Assembly (NCBI GenBank): GCA_001643675.2
Contig: LSRY02000042.1
Coordinates: forward strand, 805,252-869,251
From: Monocercomonoides exilis PA203
Lineage: Eukaryota > Protista > Preaxostyla
Length of the DNA: 64,000 nucleotides
Direction: 5' to 3'
The notes under the pieces were generated by a model. It searched no databases, had not been told where the DNA came from, and saw only the letters and a list, made by a program, of their open reading frames with translations. Below, in pieces: positions 43,933 through 59,851 of the stretch; within the stretch, counting starts at the first letter, position 1, and each line of letters starts with the position of its first letter. A program made the translations under genes and the position numbers.

Positions 43933-44889
43933 TTTTGAAAACACATTGCATTCAAAAAACCAAAGCAATTTTTATCATTCACATCGAATTCGAATGTGTT
44001 TGGATAGAAAAAAGTTGCACAAATTTAATCCCCAAATAATCATGAAAATACTAGAATTCACACCATATCTTTTTGCATTAATATTTTTGAGTTGGAATAA
44101 AGGAGAAAAGCAACGCCTAATCTTTTTCAAGTTTATTGTTATGGATATTCGGATCATCAGATTTGAAAGAACAAAAATATTCCTTCCAAAAATAAGAGAT
44201 CGGTGAGCGAACTTTTTTCTAAGAATAGGCAATTTTATTTTGAACACTGAAAAGAGATAGCGTCAGCGAGGTGTCTATGATGGAATTAGACGAAATGGGT
44301 GATTTTTTTTGATTTCATAAAAAATTTCGACGATTGATCATAAAAAATTTTCATAAAGGGTGTGGTTAATAAGAAAATTTATGTTTGAAATTGCATGAAA
44401 ATATCGATTAATATATTATTATTGTTGATTGTTTGTTGATTAAAATTTGTTTCCAATTGATTTCATTTCAAATATCTTAAAATAAAAATAATTTCAAAAA
44501 AAAAACTCGAAAATTCAAATAACATTATAAAACGTAAGTTATCTTGTTTGAAAAGCATGATAATGATTGTTTCAATACTCAATAAATTGATTTCCAATAC
44601 ATATATATGTTAAAAAATGTTACAGCAAAAAAATATTGTATTTAAATTTGAAGATCTTAAAACAATAGTCAAAATTTTAAATTTTTCAAAAATTAACATC
44701 GAAAAAGATAATAGAAACTCAAGACATTTATCAAACAAACAAATTTTTGTCATTTATTTTTGTTCGAAAACAAACAATTCTATGAAATTGTTATTTTGAT
44801 TAATTGATCAAAATTATTTTATGAAAATATCAAAGGAATGAGGAAAAATAACAGGAAATTCTTGAAGTTCAGCTTTTTTTCTTTTAAGG

Positions 44890-47352
44890 CTTCAACAGCA
44901 CGGATATCCTCGTTTTGTCTTTCTCATCTCTAAATCATCTGCGCCACTTTTATTCTCCTTTTTTCTTCCTCGACTCTCATCCTTTATCCTGATATCTGTC
45001 CCATAAGTTGCCTGGTTTTGCGGGCTGCTTTTTTTCGAGAAATAATCTTCATTCGAAAACTGCTCAAACAACAACTGACTCTTCATAAAGGCATGCGTCT
45101 TTTGATTACTGCATCAACATCACTGTTTTCTTGTCGCCATCCTTTCTCCAGATATCTGCTCCATCCACTTCCTCAACACTCTCATCCCTCTCTCTCCAGT
45201 TCTCTTTGAATTCTGGAACTGCACTCGTTGCCTTCTGCTCATTTGCTTTGGCTAGCTCCGCCGCTTCGTTTTCACAAGTCACATACCACAGAACAGCCAT
45301 CGCTCTGGACATTGCTAATATCTGCAACGTTATAAACACATGCAAAGGGCCAACACTTGTGTGAATGCTGACAGATGATTTGCAGTCTACTATTTGGACG
45401 AGATTGAAGCTGCAATTGTGTGACTTAACAACAAGAAGTTGCGACTGTTTGTCTCAATTGCTCCAAACTTGCAAATGTTCCTTCCATTCTTCATTCTCTA
45501 TCCTCAACCACCGCTTCACCTTGAGCGATGCCTTTGTCGGCAAATATGTCTTTCTCAAGTTTTCCAGGATTCGCTTCATATATCAACGAATCCCTTTTTT
45601 CACTCGATTTCACTCAACACTCTCTCGCCACAAAACCCCCATCTGAGATTCCGACTTCTTCTATTTCAGCTTTTTCATCGTATCCAATCTTCTCCACTTC
45701 TTTCCCTTCCTCCTCCAACAATTCCTCTTTATTCAACCTCTACACCATTAGGCTTCCACCTGAAGTCTATTTAGTCTCTGCAATTCTTGTTTGAGATCCT
45801 TTTGCAACCATTTTCTTTCAATGACTGTGGTTCTCAACAATTGCATCTTCATAAATTGCTATCTCCTAACATTCATTGTCTAAATCAACCTGTTCCTCGT
45901 TCATATGCCGTATTGAATAATTTCTCGATGTGTACTCCACCCTCTTTTTTTCCACCATTTTTATGTAAACCTCAGCTTCTTGCTTCTGTGTTCTCCACGC
46001 TTTAATTCTTAAACTCTCCCACATCAAACTATCCACTTTTGGCGATGTCTCTCTCATCATTGTGTTCAATGCTGACTCCAGCGACTCTGTTGAGCATCTC
46101 ATTTCCATAGATCTCATCTTTGCAACTTGTAACATTGTTCTTCCCAATCTTCTGAGCAATTTCGCTTTTTCTTCTTCTTCACCTCCTCCTCCTGTGCATC
46201 TTTCTCCTTAAGCTTTTCTGCCGTTGACTCTTTCTCTCTCTCTTTCTCTCTACTCTCTTCAGGAGCGAGAAGCAGCATACGAGACGGAGCAGCTGAAGAA
46301 GAAGAAAGAATAATAGTTTGAAACAACAAGGATGAGGGCTATGCAGGAAAAGATCATTGACGAACAAGCCATCAAAGACCAGTTGAATGCGAAGAGAGTC
46401 ACAGAGGCAGAGGAAAGAGCGTGGAGGAAAAAGCAGAAAGAATGTGGAATGAAGAGAGAGAGGGAAGAAGAGGATGAGAAGAAAAAAATGGAGAACAAAA
46501 AGAAGATTATCTCGAATTATTCATTCAAGAACCAGGAAGCATATGAGTGTGTCTTTTATTTTTCTCTCCTTTTTCATTGTCTGTGTAAAATTGATAGGAC
46601 CCTGCAAGCTCAACAACCCCTTTAAGTTTATGAGGAAGCTTAGATTCGCCTTCATTCATGTTATTCTTGTTATTCTTTTTCTTCTTCCGCTTCTTTTTCA
46701 TTTTTTGTTTTTCTTCTTTTCTTTCTCTATCTCTATCTTTTTGTTTTTGTTTTTGTTTTTCTTTTTGTCTTTCTCTTTCTATCTCTTCTTCCTCCATCTT
46801 CTTCCTCAACCTCCTCCTCCTCCTCTCCTCTTTTTTCCTCTTCATCATTTCTCCAATTGTGGATGCTTCATACAATACCTGCACAATCGTAAAGGAAAGC
46901 AAAACGAATGGAATATCAGGAGAAGGGAAATTGACTTGTTCAACAAAAGGATGTGATTTGGAGGAAGGATTGAGAGGGAGAGGGAGAAAGGTTAATGTGT
47001 GGGGGAAAAGAGGAGAAGAAGGAGAGGAGGAGGAGGAGGAAGAAGAGGAAGAAAGGGAAGGAGAGGAAGATGATGATGATGATGATGATGAAACAATTGA
47101 AGAAGAAGAAGAAGAAATTGAAGAAGAGGAAGAGGAAGAAGAGGATGAAGAAGAATTAGATGGGAAAGAAGCAGAAAGAGAAGAAGAAATAAAAGAAGGA
47201 GGAAGAGTAGTAGTAGTAGTAGTAGTAGTAGAAGAAGAAGAAGACAAACGATTGAGTGATGTTGGGATCTTTGATTTAGTACGATGTGATATTGGAGAAG
47301 AAGAAGAAGAAGAGGAAGAAGAAGAAGAAGAGGAAGAAGAAGAAGAAGAGGA

Positions 47353-47385
<33 letters not shown>

Positions 47386-50300
47386 CGATGATGAAAGAGA
47401 TGAAGAAAGAGAAGAAGAAGAAGAAGGAAGTGTTCCTGCAAGTGGTTCAGAAGAAGCTCCAAAAACAGCTTTTGAATGAACTTTTCTATCAAACAAATCT
47501 TCTTCGTCTTCCACTTCGAAGCCTTCATCTTTGTATTTAGATGTATCAATTTCTTTTTCTTCTTCTTTTTCTTCTCCTTCTTTTGCTTTTAATTTGCTTT
47601 TGTTTTTTCTTCCAAAAAAATCATTTGAAACTCCAGAAAAGCTTGTCTGTACAGTTGAGGTGGAAGAAAGAGAAGAAGAAAGAGGCGAAGAAGAAGAAGA
47701 AGGAGAACGAGAAGAAGAAGATAATGATGATGAATCTATTGTCAATTATAGAACTTCTGTGCGCAATGTATCAGACAAACATTGTTTTATTCCATTGTTA
47801 TTTTTATCTTTCTCAATATCATTAACATTATTTTTATCATTATTCGATTGATTCAAAGAGGAAATGTTTGAAGAAGCAGTTGAAGAAGCACAATCGATAG
47901 AATTAACAGAATAAACAGCTTTTGATGAATTGTATTGAGAACGGGGCATTGAAACTGACAGGAGTGAAAGCTGATTATCATTTGAGGAAGTTTTCATTGT
48001 ATGGCTGTTGAAAGAAAAAGAAGAGGAGGAAGAAGAGGAGGAAGGAGAATGAAAAGAGGAAGAGGAAAAAGAAGAAAGAGGTTGTATTGTTGTTCCCAAT
48101 GATTGCGCAGATGTTGATGTTGCTTTTGGTGTTTTATCATTATCTGCATTGTTGTTCATTGGCAAAAGAGAAGAAATAAAAGAAGAAGAATAAGAAGATT
48201 TTGAAGCTGACTGATACAAAGAAGGACGAGCAATTGTTGCGTTTATTGAAGGTGTGAAAGATGATTTGCTTGCGATTGTAGATGAAAAGGAAGAAGTTGC
48301 TGAGGATGAAAAGGAAAAATAAGATAAGATAAAAACAGCATTACAGAAATAAATAAATAATTTTATTGGTTAAACAAAATTGTAAATCAAAAGAAAGAAA
48401 GAAAGAATTGTTTGAAATAATCAGAATATTATTTAAATAAAGATAGCAAAGATTAGCAATACCTGTTTTTTGCACTTCCTCTTTTTCTTCTTTTTGAAAT
48501 CATTTTTCTTCTTTTTCTTTTTCTTCTTCTTCTTCTTCTTTGAATTCTTCTCCAAACATTCATTTCATCCTCTCCTTCCAATTCATTTCATCTCTTCCAC
48601 ATCTTTCTTTAGTTTCTGTGAAATCTTACCCCCAAACTCCACCACAAAGCACACTTCTTCTATTGTTTCTTCTTCTTTTCCTTCTATTTCTCCTCCTCCT
48701 TCTCCTTCTCTTCCCTCTTTCACTCATCCTATTCTTATCAACATTTGCATTTACATTCACATCCACATCCACATCCACAACCGCTGTCAGCTCCTTCTCT
48801 TTTTCCACAAACACATTCTCCACCGCAAATCGTGTGTTGCAATGGAATTTGAAACTGATCTTCGCTTTCATTCGCAACTGACACCGCAAAATCACCGTCA
48901 ATAGCAAGAGATAAACTACTATCAGAAGCAATAATTGAAGTGAAAGAGGGAAGAGAAGGAGAAGGAGGAGGAGAAGAAGAAGGAGAAGAAGAAGAATTAA
49001 TCTTTGCTTTTGTTGTTGATAATGATGAGGAGGGGGAAGAAGAAGAAGAAGAACTTGAAGAAGAACTTGCAAAAGAAAGAGAAAGAGAAGAAGAAAGAGA
49101 AGAAATATTTTCTTCTCTTTTCACAGGAATAACAGAGTCATAAAGTCGAGCGCCCAGTTGAGAGATGCAGATGTGCAGTGAGTGACTGCTGGCAATCAGA
49201 GAGAGAAGAGGAGATTGCGTGTGTTTGGAGTTGTATGTGGTGGATGAGGGAGTTTTGTTTGTTTGAAGAGAGGAAGAAGAGGAAGAGGAAGAGGAAGAGT
49301 TGGAGGAGGAAGAAGAAGGTAAAGAAGCAAATGATGGTGATAATGAAAGTGAACGTGAAAGAGGCTGACTCTTTTCTCCTGCTTTTGCGTCTGCTGTTGG
49401 CTGAAGCGCCATAAATGTTGCTTCTTTAGGTTCTGTTTGTAGCTCTGTTGCAGAATAGCTAACAGAATGGGATTTCATTTCACAATTCAAAAATAGTTTC
49501 TGTTGAAGTGTCCAAAGCCGATAATGGAGAGCTTCTATTCTTCGATTTCTTCTGTATCTTCATTTCAATCCCTTTTCACAATCGCCTTTGCATCTGCCAT
49601 TTTCATCATTCTTCCACTTCATTCCCTTTATTCATCTCAATCGTTTTTCCCTTTAATTTGCTCCTTCTATTTCTCATCTCATCTCTCTCTCTCTCTCTCT
49701 CTTTCTTTCTCTCACGTTCTCTTGTTTCGAAAAATGCAGGCGTTGCTATCAGCTAATCCTTTTTGATGATTTCTTCCTTTTCATCATTTTAAACGGAATG
49801 ATTTTTCAAAAGACGATGAATGAGAAGTTTTCTTTGCCTTTCCCTTGATTTCTTTTATCTTTTTTTTTGGCATGCTGGTTCTGTATATTCTTTTCATCTC
49901 AAATTTAAATTCTTCAAAATTTGTGCTCAATTTCAATTTCTTCTTTCTTCTTTCATCATTCTGTTGACATCTGTGCTTTTTCATTATCGAGAAGGCTGAT
50001 CGAAACTCGAAGACCATCTTGCAATTTTAATAATCGTTTTATTTTGCTTCAGTTATATTTTCCTCTGCTTTCCCTTCATTCCACTTTTTCATCTGCTTTG
50101 TTATACAAATGAATAAATGTTTCTTCACCATCGAAAATTTTCCTTCGTAATTCTGTTTCCAAAACTGATATTCCTCAATCTCTGCTCAAAATAGTTCTTT
50201 TCCTTTCTTTCTTCTTTTCCTCTCCATTTTTCTTCAATTCATGAAATAGTCCAAAAATCCACTCTTCCAAATCCGCTTTTTTCTCAAGCCTAATACAAAA

Positions 50301-50900
50301 GCAATGCATTTCTTTAAATTTAAAACCTTTCATAATGGCTTGCTGAGAATGAACTGATAAGATGTTACGAAGGAATACACAGTTTTGATGTAAATTGTTG
50401 ATGTATTCAATGGAAAATTCTTTATTTGCCTTTTTCATTTTATTATTCAATGTCTCGGTTTTCATACGCAAACAAAATACTGAAGTTGAAGAAGAAGTTT
50501 TGATTGAAATTCTTATGCTTTCTTGGGTGTGATGGAAGTCGATGAACAGCGAAGAAATATCAGATGTGGAGTTTTTCATGAATGTTGACGGCTTTTCACG
50601 AAGAATTTGAAGCAAAAAGTGCTTTTGGAAAATTGTGATGAAGAAGGAGAACAATGATTATTTTGATTGAAAAAGATGGGATTCAAGAGAGATGAACATT
50701 GAACGAGAAATCAACTGCTTCATTGAAAGATAGATCAAATGTTGAAGTTTTAAATAAGTGAGTTGAAGAGTTGATTGAATTGCTAAATGTAGAATAAGTT
50801 TATGAAGATGCAAATGCCATCTGACATCCAAGTTCAGCTCTATGTTTCAAGTAATCCACAAATGATAATAAATAAATAGCATTGAAAACAAAAGATAATG
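44890..50900 (-). pseudogene. Large decayed multi-exon gene(s) with Ser-rich linkers and a possible PH-like segment
   Basis: Chain of minus-strand ORFs (50175-50654, 48738-49490, 47746-48219, 46525-47745, 45866-46159, 45106-45345) with many stops. CFCIRLEKKADLEEWIFGL resembles a PH-domain C-terminal helix (weak). Confidence 0.4.
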
Positions 50901-51308
50901 CTAAGTTTATATATGATAATGAATTTTAAAATAGAAACTCTTCAAAGAAGAAGAATCATGCTTTATGCATTTCTTAAAGTGTGACCTATCTTTCTTTTAT
51001 TCGGCTGACACTGATAAATTATCTGCATGACTGCCTCTTTTCCTTGCTGCTTCTGAAAATGACTATCATTTCTTTGTGCTTCTTTTAGCTGTGATGATAA
51101 GGCAGCAATCAACAAATTCAAAATGAATGCATTCAAGTTTTCTGAAATTTACTCTTTTATTATGGTAACATTTTTGATCCAAAGATGCAGATTCTAAGAC
51201 GCAAATTTTTTTGTTCGGAACGATTGACTATTATGTAAATAAACTATTAGAAGCAAAAAATGCAGGTGTTGGAATCTGTTCTTTGATCATGAGTTGATAC
51301 ATTATTAT

Positions 51309-51552
51309 ATGTCAAAATTTTTTTGAAAAGTTCCTTTTGTTTAATTTTCAAATAAAGAATAAATTATATATTTTAATCAAATTTCTGTTCCCACTTACGA
51401 AACTTCACTAAGATGGAAATAATAACATTGTCAAGCATTAGTTTTAATGACAGCGAAATTTGGTGAGTGGGAACAAAAATTTGATCGAAATACGAAATTT
51501 TTATTTTCTTTGAAAATTAGACAAAAGGAACTTTTCAAAAAAATTTAGACAT
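51309..51552. repeat. Imperfect ~244-bp palindrome (MITE-like)
   Basis: atgtcaaaatttttttgaaaagttccttttgt...ttcccac mirrors gtgggaacaaaaatttgat...acaaaaggaacttttcaaaaaaatttagacat. The arm also matches 27985-28075. Confidence 0.75.
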
Positions 51553-52483
51553 TTGTTGAATTGAGCTTTGGGGTTTTTTGTTCAAACGAAAAAATTTTTT
51601 ATGTTATTGGAAAATTAAAAAAATGCAATGTGAAATACACTTTAAAATATTTATTTTGCTAGTGAACACATTTTCACATTTTTGTTTTTATTTGTTATTT
51701 TTATTTCAGTAAAGCTGGATATTTATTGTGAATTGAAAATTTGATACAATAAAAAATAAAATCAATCGTTCACCAATCAAAATTACATAAAAAAAATAAA
51801 TAAATAGTACTTCACGATATTGATCATTGAAAAAAATAGAAAACAATTAGAATATTTCTTAATAGATTCTGTAACTCTTAATAAAACTTTATTCTATCAC
51901 ATAATCATAAAACAATCACCAAATATCAACGAAATATCAACAATTTTGAACAATAAAAAATATAAGAAAAATATATACTATTTAAGCAAATTCGTGGTAT
52001 CAAGGACAATTCCAAACAAAAAAGAATATTTGTATAAAAAGTTCAAAAACAAACTTGTCTATTTTCCATCTGTTTTCCATCCACTCTTCCCTTTCTGATA
52101 TTTCTCTAACTTTGACTCAAAAAGATCAAATCCAACAAAGAAAAAAGACAGACACAATGATAAAACATCACTTCACACTCTCAATAACTCTCCCTTCCAA
52201 AAACCTCACTCAAAGATCAATGAATTCCCTCACAACTCTCTCTATTAATGAATCTCGATGAATACATATATAAGCGGGACAATAACCAAGAAATAAATCG
52301 GGACATTATAGGGACAAAAACCACAAAAAGACAATCGGATTCTAACTGTTGTGCACCTGGGAGGCTGTTCGTCGTATCCAGGTCCGGATAAAGCAGCCCA
52401 GAGGCTGCAGTATGTAATTCGAACAGTCATGTCCAGCACCCTTCCGATAGAATGCCAGCTAAGCATACACAACAACTAGTTTC

Positions 52484-55306
52484 TTAAAAAGGGACACCAT
52501 TAATACAATTTTGAGATTCATAAAAAGAAGAAGAGTCAAGAAGAAGCTCAAATCTCCTTGAAAGAAGATCTTGAGAAGATTGAGAAAGAAGAGAAGAGTT
52601 AGATGATGTGATATCAGAGTGAAATGACTTCCTTGTTCGTTGCACTTTTTCTTTCATTGTCGAAGATTCGAGGGCAACCAGAGAGCGTTGAGGAAGATAT
52701 CCAACAGCAGATGCACAGACAAATGAGCCCTTGCGCTCAAAGAATAAATAGTCCTTCATGTGAGGGACTGACAGAGATGGCCATGAAATTTGCTGAGATG
52801 GTACATATTCTTCAAAGTACCTCTCATGTGCAGAGTCATTGACAGTTGATGACGATGGAGAAGAACTTGTTGAGGATGATGTTGAGAAAATGTTTGATTG
52901 TGAAGTTGAAGAAGCTGAGTTGGAAGCGTTCATATTGTTTTCGAAGAAGTCGATCAAATCGTGAAGTGTGTTGATGTGTTCTGTCGAAAGATTGTTGTCG
53001 ATTGTGTTAACAAGTGCACCAAATTCACTATCACAAATATTCTTTCCATGGTGCTCAGCGAAGAAATTGAGTTGAGTGTTTTTCTTTTTAAGGAGTTTCG
53101 ATTGTTTGGAGAGGATGAAGTGAAGAAGGAAGCGATTTCGGTTGTGTGGACCAGAATCGCAGAAAAACTTAAAAGTGTGAGTGTCTGTGAAGAAGTGTCT
53201 TTTGATCACAGATTCCAGACACTCAATAACAAATCTGTGATCATTTGAGAGGCAGTCGGAGAAGAAGTTGAATTTTCGTTTTATTTGTTGATTATTAATT
53301 TTTTGAAGAGAGATGATTGTGAATTGGGAGACTTGTTGATAATTGAAGAATTCTTGTTGAAGTTGATTTTTTCTGATGGGGAGTTTCCATTTCTCTTTGA
53401 AGTCAAAGACAAAGACTGCTTCTCCCTCTTTCAGGTTTTCGATAGAAGATTGATAATGTTTGCGTTGCATTTCTGCAACGAGTCGATGTTGACGAAGTAA
53501 TTTAAGTGTATGAAACTCGGCAGAAGAAAGTCCATTTTTGTTTTGTGAAGATTTGAGTTTGTTTTCCAGATAGTTGAGTTTCTCGCACATGCCACAGAGA
53601 TCTGTGCGCCTTTTTGCTTTGGAGAAGTTGGTTGTGAGTTGGTAAAAATGTGACAGAGAAACTTTGATGTTTGTTTCATCTGTAAACTCTTTCCATAATT
53701 TTGTCTTGGGCTTGAAGATTAATCTCTTTTCATTCGGAGAAAAGATGCCCGTTTTCTTTCTTCTTTCTTTCAGTGCTTCCAATATATTGTTAGTTGTTAT
53801 TGATGAAGAAAGTTGTGGAATGGGAGTAGTTTGATATGGTGGTGTGATAAACGATGATGCTGATAATGATGCTGATGATGAAATGTTATTTAAAGTGCTT
53901 GAATTTGATGTTTCTGAAGAAGAAGAAGAACCACCAAATTGAATAGCAGATAGTGTTGGTTTTGTTTTTTCTTTGATATAGAATGTCAGCGAAGGAACGA
54001 AACCTTGTTCATAAAGATCTTTCCATGATGAATTCCAGTTTTCTTTGTCCAATTCAAAGATATCAGAATCGTTGCAAATATTCCACAATGCCTCTCTTAC
54101 TGCCTTCCTTTTCACAACTGCAATGTAATGCCCATTTTGTAGATCTAAACGCTTGAAAAGAATTTGTCCTGAAAGATGATAAATAATCGTTTCCTGATTA
54201 TCTTTTTGAAGATGTTGAATTTTTTCTGTTGAAAACCCTTTGCAGAAAGTGCGCTGATTAACACGATCTGTTTCAATCAGAAGTGTTCTTGAAGGAGCAG
54301 AACGAGCAGCATCAGTGCATTCATGACAGAGGGCTAGCACCTCTGGAAATGCAGCCATTTCCTCCCATCTCGCAGCACAGCATTTCTCTTTGCAATCGTT
54401 GCAATAGACAGCATTTTTTCCGTACAATATCTCAGTAGAAAAGAGAGAAGATAGACCTTTATGAGGAGAGGATGAATTTATGATAACATTGTTACAAGAT
54501 TCATTGAAATGATTAGAAACTTTTTGACATTTTTGACATTTGTGATGAGTGATTAAAACAGGATTGAAGGTATCCTTATTTATCAACTCATCTTTTCGAA
54601 GAAGTTGGTGAAGATTGTTAAACGCCTCAGTCACATTTTGTTGCTGTCTGCGACCATTTCCACAAAAGTCTTCCCATTTGTTGATCAATGGTGGGACCCA
54701 GGAACGCACTGCCATTCTATCTTTAGCCAATTGTTGACAAACACTAATAACACGCGAAGATGTGTTCTTCATAGCTGTTTGTTTTTTGAAAAAAGATGGC
54801 TTTTGTGAAATGATAGAAGACATGCATTGAAGAAGAGAGGCCATATAGCAAGTATTTCCTAAATTTTGCAAGCCGTTAACTGTTTTTGATGAAGAACTGG
54901 AATCTTTGTTAATGTTTGAAAACATCGATGAAGAAGGAGATTGAATTGCAGGAAGAACATCCATTGCGTTGCTGTTTGACATGGTTTGTGCAAAATTATC
55001 ATGAAGCGATAAATCACTATCATCTGTTTGTGTATTATGTTGAGAAGATGAAGTGATGATTTCTTTTGAAAATGACAAAAGAAGATTTTGGAACGCTTGA
55101 GGAGGAATAAGAGTTGGTGAAGTGGCATATTCAACTAATTGATCACTCACCCATACATCATTGTTGCTGAAGGAAGAAGTGTTTGTTGTTTCATTTTGTT
55201 GCTTTTTGGAAGATGAGGAAGATGAGGAAGATGAGGAAGAAGATGGTGTAGTCGTTTTAGGTTAGGGTTAGGGTTAGGTTAGGTTAGGTTAGGGTTAGGG
55301 GTTCAT
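52484..55306 (-). CDS. Ubiquitin-specific protease (peptidase C19) fused to a Sola-like DDD transposase
   Basis: USP Cys box GLQNLGNTCYMASLLQC (~54830-54874), QQN..EAF, CxxC..CxxC finger, His box GHYIAVVK (~54110-54133) and WNICNDS. After a Ser-rich linker come DLCGMC..H, VFDFKE, FFCDSGPHNRN and FFAEHHGKNICDSEFG. The frame stays open upstream of the called GTG (55150) to 55261, and there is an in-frame ATG at 55306-55304. USP call is strong; the transposase superfamily is recalled from motifs. Confidence 0.8.
55257..55303 (+). repeat. Interstitial telomeric tract, 8 units (TTAGG/TTAGGG/TTAGGGG)
   Basis: Direct reading; same orientation as the terminal telomere. Confidence 0.95.
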
Positions 55307-56719
55307 CTGTGCATGGAAGATTAGGGATGGGTTGTGCATGATGTGTGGAATCATGTTGTACATAATTCTAGTATCATTCGGACCTCAAATTTTTGAGCTA
55401 ACCTACGATAACCTTATTTTGTAGGAGGTCCTAAGAAAATCAGTTTTTCATTGAATTTTATCTATTGTGTTATGAATTTGTTCATTGATCATTATATATT
55501 TATGCACATTTGAGATGAAATTCATATTGCATTGAAAGTCATACAACACCTCATGTGCAAATAACCTTCGAAAACTTCTTCTTTCTTTTATATTTTGAGT
55601 CAATGAAATGATAGTAATTACTGAGTCATTGGTGATGTTGCAACCCATGAATATCATTCAACATATTGGAATAGTTCATATGAATGTGCTTATATTAATA
55701 AAACTGATTATTTGAATATTAGAACCTTCGAAAACATTTCAGTCATTTGTTGTGATTTCAATGAAATGAATGAAAATAATTGAGTATATTGATTGAAATT
55801 GACCAACTAGAACTTTGCTCTTGATAGAAATGCGTGCGTTTATTTGACTTTTAATGAGAGTGAAACCCAATGATATTGATGATACAAAATATTTGTATAT
55901 TGCTGAATGAATATTCCCGTTAAGAACCAAAAATTATCTCTCAAAAGAATTAAATGCAAAATTTCTTTGCTATCTTCAGAATTATTATTTTCTTTTTGAT
56001 AGAAACATTTTCATTAATAACCGAAGAATATTCCATTTATCATATGAGGTTCAAACTGAAATATGATATTGAAATTCAAAATGTTGAATGAGTGCAACCC
56101 ACTAATATGATCATTTTGAATATCATTATTGTTCAAGTGTTTTTGAGTGAATGACTGTTTTCATCCTAACCAATGAAAACAACTGATAATGAATGAGAGT
56201 TAATCTTTTTAATCTTCTGATGAATAAGATTTTGATTTCATTCTTTTATCAAAAAAGAAAATGAAACCCAACAATATTTAAGAGAGAGAAGAATATTTTT
56301 TTATTTTGATCATCTTTCAATATTCATTTAGATAAGAACTTGCAACCCAAGAAAACTTCCAATTTTAAAGAAAAAAAAGAATTTAATTTATCTGGATTAT
56401 TTATATTAATCTGAAAATTTATTAATAATATCAATTTGTTATTGAAAAACATTCAATAAACCTCAATAAAATCGAATAATATCAAGAGTGAAAAATATCA
56501 AAAATATTGGTCGTTTGATGAAAGATTAACATCAATTTCATCTGACCTTTGATATTTCTTTCAAAATAAAAAAAGTGAAAAATATAAAAAAAATAAAAAG
56601 GTAATTAACTGGGTATAACTTGGCGAAGCCAAATGAAAATACAATATTTCGGAAAACAATGACTATATAGAAAAAATCAAAAACCAATAAAAATTCAAAT
56701 CAAAAGGTAATAAAAAAGT

Positions 56720-59416
56720 TTATTTTTCATCATCATGATGAATTTCGATTTTTCTTTCTTTAGTATTTCTTTTTTTCATTTCTTTTTTCAAACTAATTTT
56801 TTCCTCAATTTCTTCAGTTTCTTCATCATCAGAATCATCATCTTCATCATTTTCATCAGAATCATTATCATCTTTCAAAATCATCTTTCTTCTCTTCATC
56901 TTTTTCTTTGTCATGTTTTCATCTTTCCAACCTTCGATAACCCCCAAATTTCTGAGACGATCTCTGCAATCACGAGGCATCCTCCCAGGTAACTCAGCAG
57001 CCATCTCAACCATTCTTTTCTTTTCAAAATTCATTTCAAGCAATTTCAAGTCTTCTTCTTCCGTCCAAGGGACCCTTTTTCTGTGACCTTTTTCATCGAC
57101 TTCCCTATGCAAAGAGTGCTCATAGGGGCAAGGTTTCTTTCTTTCATAGACTTTCATCTCTTTCTTTCCTTCAATTTCATCATCCACGAACCTAAGCAAA
57201 TCATCCACTATATCCTCAACACTTTCATTCAAATCATAATATCTTTCATTCAAATGACGAATTCCAACATCCACTCTCGCATTGTTCATTGTCGCAGTTC
57301 TCGATCTGTTCTCCTTGTAGTTTTTGTGCTTGGTATATATTTCACTCGCCTCCTTTTCCATTGCATCATCACTTGCAACATAACGTGCCAAAGCATCTTT
57401 CCAAGCTCTCTGTCTATACAACTTTCTTTTCTCCTCAGTTTTTTTCTCAGTCGTAGAAGTTACTTTTTCAACATTGATTCTCTCTTTGAAAGCTCGACGA
57501 ACCCACTGAATGGCAGTTCTCTCACAAATGTTGTGTTCAATATCATTGTTGAAATTGATGTTGTGAAATGTCTCAGGATTGACAAGAGACATATCGATGA
57601 CTTCATTGTCGATTTTGGTTTTGATGACTCTAGAAGCAACGATGGATGCAGTGATAGCAGGCTTTGCATATCTATTCTGAACCTTCGAATTGGGGATCCA
57701 GCCAGCAATGGCAGCTGTGTACATATAGGCCGAATCCCTTGCATGAGCATCAACACCCGCAGCCAAGATCGCAGAACACATAAACCCACTTCTGAATGAA
57801 TGGAAGGAGAAGAGATCGTGTGGGTACCCAGCAGCTTGAGCACGACGACGAAGACGTTGAGACATTGCATCTCTGGTGAGATTCCATAACCTTTGTTTTT
57901 TCAACATATCACCCAGAACCCAAGAATCGCGATTGTGAAGATCCAAGTCGAATGCATTCTTTAAGTGTTGATTTAACCAGTACAAGCAATTCAAATTATC
58001 CCTCTGATCCAACGTTCCCTCTATTGAAACAGTGTGATTCCAGTTCTGATTGGCCTTTGTAATCCTGAACTTGATCTTCAAAATTTGGGTTTCACCAGAC
58101 TCAGAGGTGATTAAAGCACCGATATCTCCAATCAGCACATTCGACACTGTGATCGCCCTAGCACCAGTGTTGATTGCCACTAACCAAAGAGAAGCTTCCA
58201 TTGCCTTCGTTGGTGACTGATCATTCGTTCTGTCAATGATTCTCTCAACGTCTGACAAAATACACGGTTCCTTCCCTTTTCCATCTCCCTTCGCATTTTT
58301 GTCATTTCTTCCCTCTCTCAAAACCTGAGCGATTGCATGTTCCACTTCATCAGAGATTGGTGATCCTGTTCTCATAATCTCAATTCTCTTCAAACTGCAG
58401 GCGAAAACGTTTTCAATTGTTGATCGTACGTAACAGCGAGATCGATACAAGAACCGAAGAAAAGCAGAAGCATTTGTTTTGTTAAGAGGGTACATTGAAA
58501 TCCTTCGTTGCTCACAGAAAGTTGCATAAACTTGTTCCACATAAGCATGCTTTTCGAGTGTGCTATCAGCATAGCCAGGTCCAGCTTTATCGAATTGTCG
58601 AAGTTCCTCTTCTGTCATTGACATTAACATATTGATTGCCCGACATCTGCGAGGGCTGGATTCACTCTGTTTCTCTTTCATTGATTGTTGTTTCTCCCAG
58701 TCACTCATATCGGCTGTGACTGTTTGTGAAGAAGATGGAGATGATGACGATGATGACATTGAAGATATGGATCTCAACAAGGGCGGGTGATTGTCCAACC
58801 CAAGGAAATCATCTTCTCTATTCTGACTTTCCATTGAATTTCCATTCAGTTGAGTGAATGTGGGTATCTTGAAGGCAAGTTCGACAGATGAATCAGATGA
58901 ATCATAAGTATCAGAAGAATCGGATGAGAGAGTTTCGAGAGAGAACCTTTGATTTTCAGATTCCTTCTCATCCTCTTCTTCAAATTCAGACTCATCCACA
59001 AGAACAACCTCTCTCAATTTCTCCTCTTTCTTCTTTTTCAATAACCCAGAAATCCTTCCTTTCACTTCTCTCTTTCCTTTCTTTCTGTTCTTTTCATTCA
59101 TTCCACCTCTCCCCTTCCTTTCCTTCTTCTTATCCTTATCCACAATTTCCATCTCCTTCCTCTCTTCCACTCCTTCAAAATTCTTTTCCTCTTCCTCAGA
59201 GATCCTTTTCCACAAGCTCTTCTTCGGCGGTGAGAACCATTGATTATCAACCTTTGTCGATGATGAAGGTGACGATGATGACGATGATGGCGAAGATGAA
59301 GATTCACTTACGATAGTCGAAGTCGAAGTAGAAGAAGCAGAAGCAGAAGCAGAAGGACGCCAAGAAGAAGAAACTGAAGCAGAAGGAGGGAGACCTGTTT
59401 CGGAAAATTCCGGCAT
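56720..59416 (-). CDS. Tyrosine recombinase (Crypton/DIRS/Cre-like catalytic domain) with a C-terminal Myb/SANT domain
   Basis: 898-aa intronless ORF. Helical core-binding-like region STLEKH..YATFC..FLRFL; catalytic TGAR (~58160), ITKAN, FSFHSFRSG (~57795) and IAGW..VQNRYAK (~57670). Myb RKRVPWTEEEDLKLL..LPGRMPRDCRDRLRNL (~56947-57082). Confidence 0.88.
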   Translation of the reverse strand: MPEFSETGLPPSASVSSSWRPSASASASSTSTSTIVSESSSSPSSSSSSPSSSTKVDNQWFSPPKKSLWKRISEEEEKNFEGVEERKEMEIVDKDKKKERKGRGGMNEKNRKKGKREVKGRISGLLKKKKEEKLREVVLVDESEFEEEDEKESENQRFSLETLSSDSSDTYDSSDSSVELAFKIPTFTQLNGNSMESQNREDDFLGLDNHPPLLRSISSMSSSSSSPSSSQTVTADMSDWEKQQSMKEKQSESSPRRCRAINMLMSMTEEELRQFDKAGPGYADSTLEKHAYVEQVYATFCEQRRISMYPLNKTNASAFLRFLYRSRCYVRSTIENVFACSLKRIEIMRTGSPISDEVEHAIAQVLREGRNDKNAKGDGKGKEPCILSDVERIIDRTNDQSPTKAMEASLWLVAINTGARAITVSNVLIGDIGALITSESGETQILKIKFRITKANQNWNHTVSIEGTLDQRDNLNCLYWLNQHLKNAFDLDLHNRDSWVLGDMLKKQRLWNLTRDAMSQRLRRRAQAAGYPHDLFSFHSFRSGFMCSAILAAGVDAHARDSAYMYTAAIAGWIPNSKVQNRYAKPAITASIVASRVIKTKIDNEVIDMSLVNPETFHNINFNNDIEHNICERTAIQWVRRAFKERINVEKVTSTTEKKTEEKRKLYRQRAWKDALARYVASDDAMEKEASEIYTKHKNYKENRSRTATMNNARVDVGIRHLNERYYDLNESVEDIVDDLLRFVDDEIEGKKEMKVYERKKPCPYEHSLHREVDEKGHRKRVPWTEEEDLKLLEMNFEKKRMVEMAAELPGRMPRDCRDRLRNLGVIEGWKDENMTKKKMKRRKMILKDDNDSDENDEDDDSDDEETEEIEEKISLKKEMKKRNTKERKIEIHHDDEK

Positions 59417-59621
59417 AGTCTTGTTCTCCTCTGAAAAAACGCCAGAAAATCAACCCAAAAAAATCAAAAATTCAGCAGAGTTTTCCCAAGGAGGGAACAA
59501 ATCAACAGAAAAAAGAACCGAAAAAAACAAAAATTTGAGCATAGTCATCCCAAGGAGAGAATAAAAATAAAAAAAAAACAACCAAAAAATATCAAAAATT
59601 CAGCATAGTCATTCCAAAGAG
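59405..59621. repeat. Four imperfect ~63-bp-period direct repeats overlapping the recombinase start codon
   Basis: Core AAAATT-C/G-A/G-GCA(T/G)AGT..(T/C)CCAA with GCA at 59413, 59475, 59539 and 59603 (spacing 62, 64, 64). Confidence 0.65.
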
Positions 59622-59652
59622 TTAAAAAATCGAAAAAAAACAGACAAAAAAT

Positions 59653-59670
59653 GGTTAGGGTTAGGGTTAG
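59653..59670 (+). repeat. Short interstitial telomeric tract (GGTTAG)x3
   Basis: ggttagggttagggttag, separated from the telomere by ~181 bp of unique sequence. Confidence 0.9.
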
Positions 59671-59851
59671 CGCAGACCGGTAGTCATAAACGAGATTTAT
59701 TTTATAAAATGTCGGTTATAATAAATCCGTAACCTATTTTTCTGATATTTAAAAATATTTAATGAAAGATGATGTAAAAAACATCATGTTCGGTGCATGA
59801 AAAGCAATATTTTCAACAAAATTGATCGTAAAATTAATCAATGTTATGTTA

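Follow-up and report, generated by a model that had tools for sequence, protein, structure and literature searches.

Monocercomonoides exilis PA203 carries, on contig LSRY02000042.1, a chromosome end at which two long genes lie next to the telomere. The stretch of DNA analysed here (the window) comprises 64,000 nucleotides, positions 805,252 to 869,251 of the contig, and positions are given in window coordinates throughout. The inner gene, open reading frame (ORF) A, encodes a transposase that also carries a deubiquitinase domain (USP-transposase). The outer gene, ORF B, is predicted to encode a tyrosine recombinase (YR) with a single Myb repeat (YR-Myb). From the proximal to the distal side the order is the USP-transposase ORF, about eight TTAGGG units (tract 1), the YR-Myb ORF, three TTAGGG units (tract 2), 181 bp of orphan DNA and a 4.1-kb telomere. 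Shuffled sequences are expected to hold no copy of the pattern TTAGGGTTAGGG; the window holds 499, which outside the terminal array are confined to tracts 1 and 2; all 18 nucleotides of tract 2 are identical to part of tract 1. Both ORFs are directed away from the telomere. An earlier sequence-only reading of this DNA had described the two genes, co-oriented away from the telomere, together with the two tracts, the 181 bp and the telomere, and each of these was found in its place (Table 1).

Two unrelated mobile elements appear to be juxtaposed at this end. ORF A belongs to a cut copy of a dispersed transposon, while ORF B is the gene of an element restricted to chromosome ends; this structural part is very likely correct. 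That the YR element was joined to the telomere by its own recombinase has about an even chance. The account as a whole, recombinase-driven mechanism included, is judged probable.

The YR-Myb element

Nine YR-Myb loci of M. exilis were compared: the window and eight others, designated L001–L004 and L030–L033 (L005–L008 are internal loci of the transposon, and P-numbers denote proteins). All nine, each at a different end, lie within 40 kb of a contig end, a zone that holds approximately 10% of the 82-Mb genome (101 contigs), and most of them within 25 kb. For the YR-Myb gene, recurrence at other chromosome ends, proposed as a check by the sequence-only reading, was observed at every locus examined. 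The USP-transposase is absent from the eight other loci. L001 and L033 repeat the layout of the window, with a telomere, a leader containing 64-bp repeats, an inward gene, 1.0–1.4 kb of AT-rich DNA and a short tract; in L002 a 76-bp tract lies 1.1 kb beyond the stop codon. In L003 and L032 the terminal array truncates copies within the ORF, and the window element is cut on its outer side by telomere repeats. Interstitial tracts at YR loci all share the polarity of the nearby end. The genes fall into two deep subfamilies: in that of the window all seven copies point away from the end, while in the subfamily of P0033, P0083 and P0173 all eight point toward it and are preceded by very short tracts. 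As far as these aligned loci go, the family consists of chromosome-end-restricted single-gene elements in which the inner terminus is joined to host telomere repeats and the orientation is fixed per subfamily.

In the window the element is bounded by direct telomere-repeat tracts, which are its sole terminal repeats; no inverted or long direct terminal repeats were found in it. Pfam searches detected neither a reverse transcriptase (RT) domain nor any other domain-bearing ORF of at least 60 amino acids between the tracts. A search of 51000–59860 for a tRNA-like promoter or structured RNA, using tRNA and Rfam models, returned only sub-threshold chance matches.

The inner terminus is a conserved sequence of approximately 190 bp, starting TCATCTGTGCATGG directly after the tract, which recurs beside tracts in L032 and L004. 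Positions 55303–55494 are 79% identical to L032 15757–15957, a piece of a 300-bp solo remnant between two tracts, and 55301–55439 are 74% identical to L004 14356–14219, directly beside a tract. Solo stumps of the inner terminus, 300–500 bp long and lying between two telomere tracts, were noted at L032 15626–16071 and L004 13850–14382. Such stumps are the traces of earlier elements, of which erosion had removed nearly everything by the time the end was capped again.

The outer border is not native. The leader is 95% identical to L001 3762–3998. Tract 2 (59653) is precisely where similarity to L001 and L033 sets in, while those two copies run on for a further 195–237 bp of leader. For this reason tract 2 is read as a healed erosion point inside the 64-bp repeats. 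The 181-bp orphan piece beyond it has no match in any fetched locus. By analogy with the solo stumps in L032 and L004, it may be the proximal remnant of an element that arrived later and was mostly lost.

The core common to four close copies ends at the sequence CTTGGGTTGC (at approximately 56340 in the window, 7043 in L001, 6773 in L033 and 17024 in L032). Beyond this sequence the 3' modules, each of about 1 kb, are unrelated between copies, which suggests that 3' modules may be exchanged at a fixed point.

Between 55301 and 59416 the hexamer AACCCA occurs ten times on the plus strand (TGGGTT in the sense of the gene) and twice in the other orientation; the other 55 kb contain six, both orientations included. 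In the 3' module the AACCCA-type motif often takes the form TGCAACCCA. Other copies contain three or four against 0.3 expected (L001 6666–7700, L002 12659–13786). The TGGGTT motif amounts to one telomere-like unit in the opposite orientation to the tracts on either side, and its copies could be protein-binding sites. Enrichment of TGGGTT as a feature of the whole family was rejected, as it is not seen in metagenome relatives.

The YR-Myb protein

The structure of the ORF B product was modelled with AlphaFold from a six-sequence alignment (mean pLDDT 70). The top Foldseek matches of the model are Cre, lambda Int, XerA/XerH and IntI, aligned over approximately 335 columns (E 4e-7, probability 1.0), and 55 PDB entries match at E≤1e-3. 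Residues R420, K454, R542, W573 and Y583 are invariant in the family alignment, and H539 is invariant wherever the gene model covers the position. On the basis of this model, ORF B is predicted to encode a tyrosine recombinase with a two-domain (core-binding and catalytic) Cre-like fold and an intact R-K-H-R-W-Y set.

Pfam detects only the Myb repeat in ORF B, at 24.5 bits against a cut-off of 24.4, and no integrase, GCR1_C or DUF3504 domain. When a profile of this Myb was searched against all PDB sequences, the matches were repeats R1–R3 of c-Myb (E 4e-15), B-Myb, Trichomonas Myb21/Myb3 and Reb1. The Myb had been taken in the sequence-only reading to be telomere-reading, a suggestion that the sequence does not support: its nearest solved relatives are c-Myb repeats, with no likeness to TRF or telobox proteins by sequence. 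A telobox Myb identity was likewise dropped, being unsupported by the PDB profile search. In one metagenome member of the family, P0006, the third Myb helix looks telobox-like by eye.

ORF B was compared with its paralogue in L001, to which it is 77% identical. The ratio of non-synonymous to synonymous substitution rates (dN/dS) is 0.15 for the whole gene, and the recombinase and Myb parts taken separately each give 0.13; by this comparison ORF B is under purifying selection. The synonymous rate is uneven along the gene (56720–59416 compared with L001 3999–6665): dS is 0.39 in the first 255 codons and 1.67 in the recombinase domain, and is saturated in the linker. Together with this roughly fourfold variation in dS, the 95% identity of the leader and the 93% identity of the first 380 bp beyond the stop codon point to gene conversion between chromosome ends.

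Relatives outside M. exilis

A profile search of 1.8 billion representative sequences returned 3128 proteins, 224 of them below 1e-30 and many full length including the Myb repeat. Those with a species name all come from M. exilis; the remainder are from metagenomes, from which 21 JGI loci were examined. Twelve low-GC metagenome contigs carry YR ORFs with 9–16 in-frame TAA or TAG codons and no TGA, a pattern that implies a ciliate genetic code. All 12 of these copies have TTGGGG tracts of 2–7 units on both sides, 120–250 bp before the gene and about 1.8 kb after it. Three standard-code relatives (L009, L010 and L014) have TTAGGG tracts instead. The tract repeat in the sequences examined matches the host, being TTAGGG in the oxymonad and TTGGGG in the ciliate-code relatives.

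The ciliate-code contigs (L015–L025, JGI Ga0194xxx) contain head-to-tail arrays of diverged YR elements split by (TTGGGG)2-7. Both ends of the element are conserved beside the TTGGGG tracts, although members are otherwise only 65–70% identical. At the junctions in L015–L025 the upstream element ends ...AATAAAGGGTT and the next starts AGGAGCAACTCG; in many cases CAACCCC comes after it, which is one telomere unit in inverted orientation. Three contigs share a 3.2-kb ciliate-code unit at 99.8–99.9% identity, and the neighbour that follows beyond the tract differs from contig to contig. This is the strongest sign that the tract-bounded unit is what moves.

The USP-transposase

ORF A combines a deubiquitinase domain with a transposase core. 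The deubiquitinase call of the sequence-only reading was borne out: Pfam UCH matches at 53.8 bits, above the gathering cut-off of 23.9 (E 2.7e-14), and the translation holds a Cys box (NTCY; GNTCY) and a His box (GHYIA) with a downstream ND. The transposase core has no match in Pfam. Its model, of only moderate confidence, has the secondary-structure order b1-b2-b3-a1-b4-a2-b5-a4. An acidic residue lies at each of three places in it, D583 on beta1, D665 after beta4 and D707 on alpha4, and all three are invariant in the alignment. Foldseek matches of the core to Hermes, Mos1, IstA and retroviral integrases are weak but uniform (E 4e-4 to 1e-2), and ESM-Atlas features of ORF A indicate DUF7869/ISAzo13-like clusters. 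The description of both products as DNA breaking and joining enzymes agrees with a Cre-like fold in ORF B and an RNase-H-fold core with a D-D-D triad in ORF A. Sola-type DDD transposons with accessory protease domains are a possible parallel, as a DDD triad on an RNase H fold, terminal inverted repeats (TIRs) and many dispersed copies recur here.

Four M. exilis proteins are 91–93% identical in amino acid sequence to the ORF A product. Their genes (L005–L008) sit 0.26–1.4 Mb from the ends of contigs of 1.2–1.9 Mb. The 20-kb loci of these four copies contain no telomere-type tracts (none within 10 kb), and no YR gene lies near them. From 55243 to 51752 the window is approximately 85% identical in DNA sequence to the four, and homology to all of them stops at 55243, 13 bp short of tract 1, while L005–L008 stay alike for at least a further 1.1 kb upstream. 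The conserved N-terminal 232 amino acids of the database model P0009 are encoded in L005–L008 and have no counterpart in the window. ORF A stays open as far as tract 1, which itself supplies stop codons in this frame, and the DNA between the two contains no ATG; the gene is accordingly a cut one rather than a complete one. Tract 1 as the start of the USP gene was rejected on the same grounds. The two genes had been described as long, intronless and free of internal stops in their domains. Both are long; ORF A is cut, with no ATG of its own.

On its other side the transposon extends far beyond the gene. About 7 kb downstream lies a terminal sequence common to the window, L006 and L008, which ends at approximately 44290. 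L007 carries the same sequence inverted, on the other (upstream) side of the gene, which identifies it as a long TIR. Short reads cover the transposon about ten times as deeply as the YR element, in keeping with a family of many copies. By these alignments the DNA between approximately 44290 and 55243 is the right half of a TIR transposon of about 20 kb, the left part of which is gone, and tract 1 is read as marking a former chromosome end at the break in the transposon, that is, a putative healed break.

The segment 44290–52480, between the transposase gene and the TIR-like terminus, belongs to this giant transposon. It includes long GAA/AGA-type low-complexity arrays at 46.6–49.4 kb, and the apparently decayed genes in it are probably transposon cargo rather than host genes. 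A 250-bp palindromic segment at 51307–51555 matches L007 21403–21652 both ways (86% and 79%) and gives weak, sub-threshold matches to miRNA precursors in Rfam; it is probably a hairpin-forming repeat or a miniature inverted-repeat transposable element (MITE) inside the giant transposon.

The sequence-only reading had considered both genes to be telomere-targeted, either as two stacked elements or as one composite element. The USP-transposase does not fit this description: its internal copies are far from chromosome ends, and the tract beside it is a cut site and not a target. For two stacked elements, the YR-Myb half stands, as that element is telomere-associated and apparently mobile, and the other half, a dispersed and truncated transposon, does not. 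Internal homologues unlinked to the other gene, which the same reading had named as evidence against its proposal, are found for the USP gene and not for the YR gene.

Assembly support and features

Short-read contigs assembled from four DNA runs of the same sample were compared with positions 54700–59700, the repeats at 55209–55302 and 59310–59388 being left out. They agree with 55303–59622, with 0 differences in long pieces. The terminal array has 4% indels, which is typical of nanopore data. In run X4 one short-read contig has 11 additional telomere-type letters at tract 2 (59653–59670), which points to variation in tract length within the culture or to an assembly difference. The 2021 paper on the M. 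exilis assembly reports telomere-capped contigs and does not mention recombinases or these elements.

Table 1. Features of the chromosome end in window coordinates; residue numbers refer to the ORF products.
Feature	Position	Strand	Remarks
Right arm and gene of ~20-kb long-TIR DDD transposon (by alignment)	44290–55243	-	Left arm and first ~230 codons missing
ORF A (USP-transposase)	52484–55150	-	888 aa
USP/UCH deubiquitinase domain	ORF A residues 93–370	-	Pfam UCH
DDD transposase core	ORF A ~residues 575–720	-	RNase H fold, invariant D-D-D
Interstitial telomere tract 1	55257–55300	+	~8 units, mixed TTAGGG/TTAGG; polarity as terminal telomere
YR-Myb element	55301–59652	-	4.35 kb, bounded by direct telomere-repeat tracts
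Proximal (3') non-coding module	55301–56334	-	26% GC; first ~190 bp are the conserved terminus adjoining tract 1
Conserved 3' untranslated region of element core	56335–56719	-	93% identical to L001 and L032
ORF B (YR-Myb)	56720–59416	-	898 aa
Low-complexity N-terminus	ORF B, N-terminal part	-	Precedes the recombinase
Predicted tyrosine recombinase	ORF B ~residues 290–640, nt 57497–58549	-	Foldseek, catalytic residues
Helical linker	ORF B, between recombinase and Myb	-	
Single Myb repeat	ORF B residues 781–824, nt 56945–57076	-	Pfam Myb
5' leader/promoter region	59417–59652	-	Three 64-bp repeats (59435–59644); shortened on outer side
Interstitial telomere tract 2	59653–59670	+	(TTAGGG)3; polarity as terminal array; repeat family D6
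Unique 181-bp orphan piece	59671–59851		Between tract 2 and telomere
Terminal telomere array	59852–63994	+	(TTAGGG)n with TTAGG variants, 703.8 copies, 94% matches

Discussion

The arrangement can be explained by the following series of events. The chromosome would once have ended or broken inside a copy of the transposon, and telomerase would have capped the break, so that tract 1 is the remnant of the cap. A copy of the YR element, either an excised circle or a donor end with few repeats, would then have been joined to the telomere repeats by its encoded recombinase. The reaction may have been a site-specific crossover inside the asymmetric telomere repeat, as has been proposed for Cryptons and their 4–6-bp direct repeats, and the asymmetry of the repeat would fix the orientation of the element. 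Finally, the outer side of the newest element would be exposed, eroded and re-capped. Erosion and re-capping would explain the position of tract 2 in the 64-bp repeats, the 181-bp stump, and the ORFs cut by the telomere elsewhere. The anatomy, the confinement of the family to ends, its orientation rule, the conserved terminus, the host-matched repeats, purifying selection and the cut in the transposon are all observed; catalysis by the encoded recombinase, a circular intermediate, the Myb target and the order of events are what we infer in this scheme.

Several observations weigh against a recombinase-driven origin. No excision product, circle or empty site was found in the same-sample short-read contigs, which break at the tracts, and a search for sequencing runs gave four DNA runs of one sample and no RNA run. 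The M. exilis copies were sampled through annotated proteins rather than by a whole-genome census. Interstitial tracts are all short, 12–130 bp compared with telomeres of 3.5–4 kb, and such uniformly short tracts are not predicted by random integration into a telomere. Only the inner end is conserved among the M. exilis copies examined, which leaves a complete element with both native ends undefined in this species. The 3' module of the window is unlike those of its closest relatives (L001 and L033), and differing 3' modules imply recombination among copies, which may not need the recombinase. Lastly, the search of all PDB sequences with the Myb profile gave no TRF-type entry at E≤1; with a c-Myb-like repeat and no TRF match, a role in telomere binding is proposed for this domain rather than read from its sequence.

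The main rival to recombinase-driven joining is that YR-Myb blocks are copied from end to end in the manner of yeast Y' elements, by homologous recombination or break-induced replication primed in interstitial tracts. The recombinase would then not be the mover; it may resolve telomere circles or fusions, or be a selfish passenger. Such copying accounts no less well for the single conserved junction, for the mosaics and for the short tracts. The inner junction alone would be conserved and the outer side would be whatever the chromosome end happens to be. The copies are mosaic, as seen in the contrast in dS between the N-terminus and the recombinase domain and in the 3' modules swapped at a fixed point. 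Every tract has the polarity of its chromosome end, which is what healed ends should show, and the shortness of the tracts fits priming from critically short telomeres. However, the recombinase and the Myb repeat are under purifying selection, and oxymonads, ciliates and other lineages have retained all the catalytic residues. The ends of the ciliate-code elements are both conserved beside the tract in spite of the divergence of the members, and so resemble recombination sites. Orientation is strict in each subfamily, one of which points outward; it therefore belongs to the element itself and does not result from end copying alone. Taken together, we regard spread by end copying as rather unlikely.

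The other alternatives are considerably weaker. The YR-Myb genes could be domesticated host genes, telomere or subtelomere factors that are not mobile and have expanded into a subtelomeric multigene family of the type found in many protists, and their low dN/dS, their subtelomeric location and the common occurrence of Myb domains in telomere and transcription factors would suit such a role. Host factors are not expected, however, to be truncated, frameshifted or reduced to stumps in many copies, to have conserved non-coding unit ends adjoining tracts, to lie as one 3.2-kb unit beside different neighbours in three metagenome contigs, to be stacked head to tail as several deeply diverged subfamilies, or to have a repeat type that follows the host; domestication is therefore very unlikely. 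Misjoining of long reads at a repeat-rich end could in principle have produced the tracts and the order of the blocks. The short-read contigs break at both tracts and hence do not span the junctions independently, and the indels in the terminal array are a further reason for caution. Yet the same architecture is present at other ends of the assembly (L001, L033, L032 and L002) and recurs in independent short-read metagenome assemblies of other organisms, and the sequence between the tracts is matched by short reads; an artefact is highly improbable. Least probable of all is the single composite element of transposase, resolvase, Myb and deubiquitinase suggested by the sequence-only reading. 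In the window the two genes are indeed adjacent and co-oriented, and each is preceded by a tract, but they are never linked elsewhere: none of the four transposase loci has a YR gene, and none of the eight other YR loci has the transposase. Moreover, the transposase gene is cut by its tract rather than bounded by it, and the transposon ends in a TIR of its own, some 11 kb distant. The unlinked copies rule the composite element out.

With recombinase-driven joining as the preferred explanation, the closest parallels among known systems can be considered. Crypton DNA transposons, reportedly the subject of work by Goodwin in 2003, share with the YR element a lone tyrosine recombinase gene with a C-terminal DNA-binding domain, the absence of RT and of TIRs or long terminal repeats (LTRs), and short direct repeats. 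The comparison, made by description and domains, also reveals differences: the repeats of the YR element are runs of the host 6-bp telomere unit, the element is end-restricted with a fixed orientation, and its DNA-binding domain is Myb and not GCR1_C or DUF3504. Considered as Crypton-type terminal repeats, its borders are multiples of the 6-bp unit identical at 18 of 18 nucleotides, with the outer one looking like a healed erosion point. For Cryptons, a model of circle excision and integration has been proposed in which the short 4–6-bp direct repeats are the recombination substrate, and no telomere-specific Cryptons were described (Kojima & Jurka 2011, PMC3212892). The nearest precedent found is that of the endogenous nimaviruses of crustaceans. 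In association with a tyrosine recombinase, these insert specifically at the telomere repeat motif of the host and have that motif on both sides, and there are hints of concatemers or episomes (Kawato 2023, PMC10871703). Compared by description, both systems show recombinase-associated insertion in telomere repeats with flanking repeats on both sides, but nimaviruses are animal viral genomes of 280–400 kb with a different recombinase architecture, whereas the YR elements are single-gene protist elements of 3–4.4 kb with a Myb repeat.

Other residents of chromosome ends resemble the YR element in location more than in enzymology. To our knowledge, known telomere-targeted mobile elements are almost all retroelements. 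TRAS/SART, HeT-A/TART, Giardia GilT and the Penelope-like Athena/Terminons occupy the telomere-repeat niche; they are oriented with respect to the end, accumulate there in stacks and are truncated on their outer side. All of them use reverse transcriptase, in contrast to the YR element, which has no RT domain in its 4.35 kb. Yeast Y' elements are subtelomeric modules that short internal telomere-repeat tracts divide from one another and from the sequence further in; they form head-to-tail stacks and spread between ends. Y' encodes a helicase and spreads by homologous recombination, whereas the YR element has a recombinase and no helicase. Among ciliate elements, Tec elements carry a tyrosine recombinase, and TBE1 and Tetrahymena Tel-1 have telomere-type repeats at their ends. 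Relatives of the YR family do occur in ciliate-code contigs. Unlike the YR element, with its direct tracts and YR-Myb as the sole gene between them, the ciliate elements named here end in inverted terminal repeats and are presumably mobilised by a DDE transposase.

The YR-Myb family is apparently undescribed. The searchable literature yielded no telomere-specific Crypton and no description of these M. exilis genes. The sole recombinase-based case of telomere targeting found in the literature is that of the giant viral genomes in crustaceans. A broader proposal, to which we give slightly less than an even chance, would make the YR-Myb elements an undescribed superfamily of DNA elements, widespread among protists, with oxymonads and ciliates among the hosts. 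Its members would use a Cre-like recombinase to integrate specifically and directionally into the telomere repeat of the host. Successive rounds of integration, erosion and renewed capping would build the subtelomeres, and chromosome ends might be lengthened or rescued in this way.

For the window itself, the attractive composite interpretation is corrected, the USP-transposase being a bystander cut by an old chromosome break. What the window contributes is a dated junction, in which a dispersed transposon has been cut and capped and a YR-Myb element sits on the cap. If the elements do integrate as proposed, they would constitute a new target-specific class of eukaryotic DNA transposons that tracks the host telomere repeat, and a DNA-based counterpart of telomeric retrotransposons. 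They would also offer a simple enzyme whose choice of site can be tested in vitro. The testable question is raised of whether an asymmetric telomere repeat can serve as the crossover site of a recombinase, and whether this helps or harms the maintenance of chromosome ends. For M. exilis, such elements would explain how the chromosome ends of a model amitochondriate protist are built.

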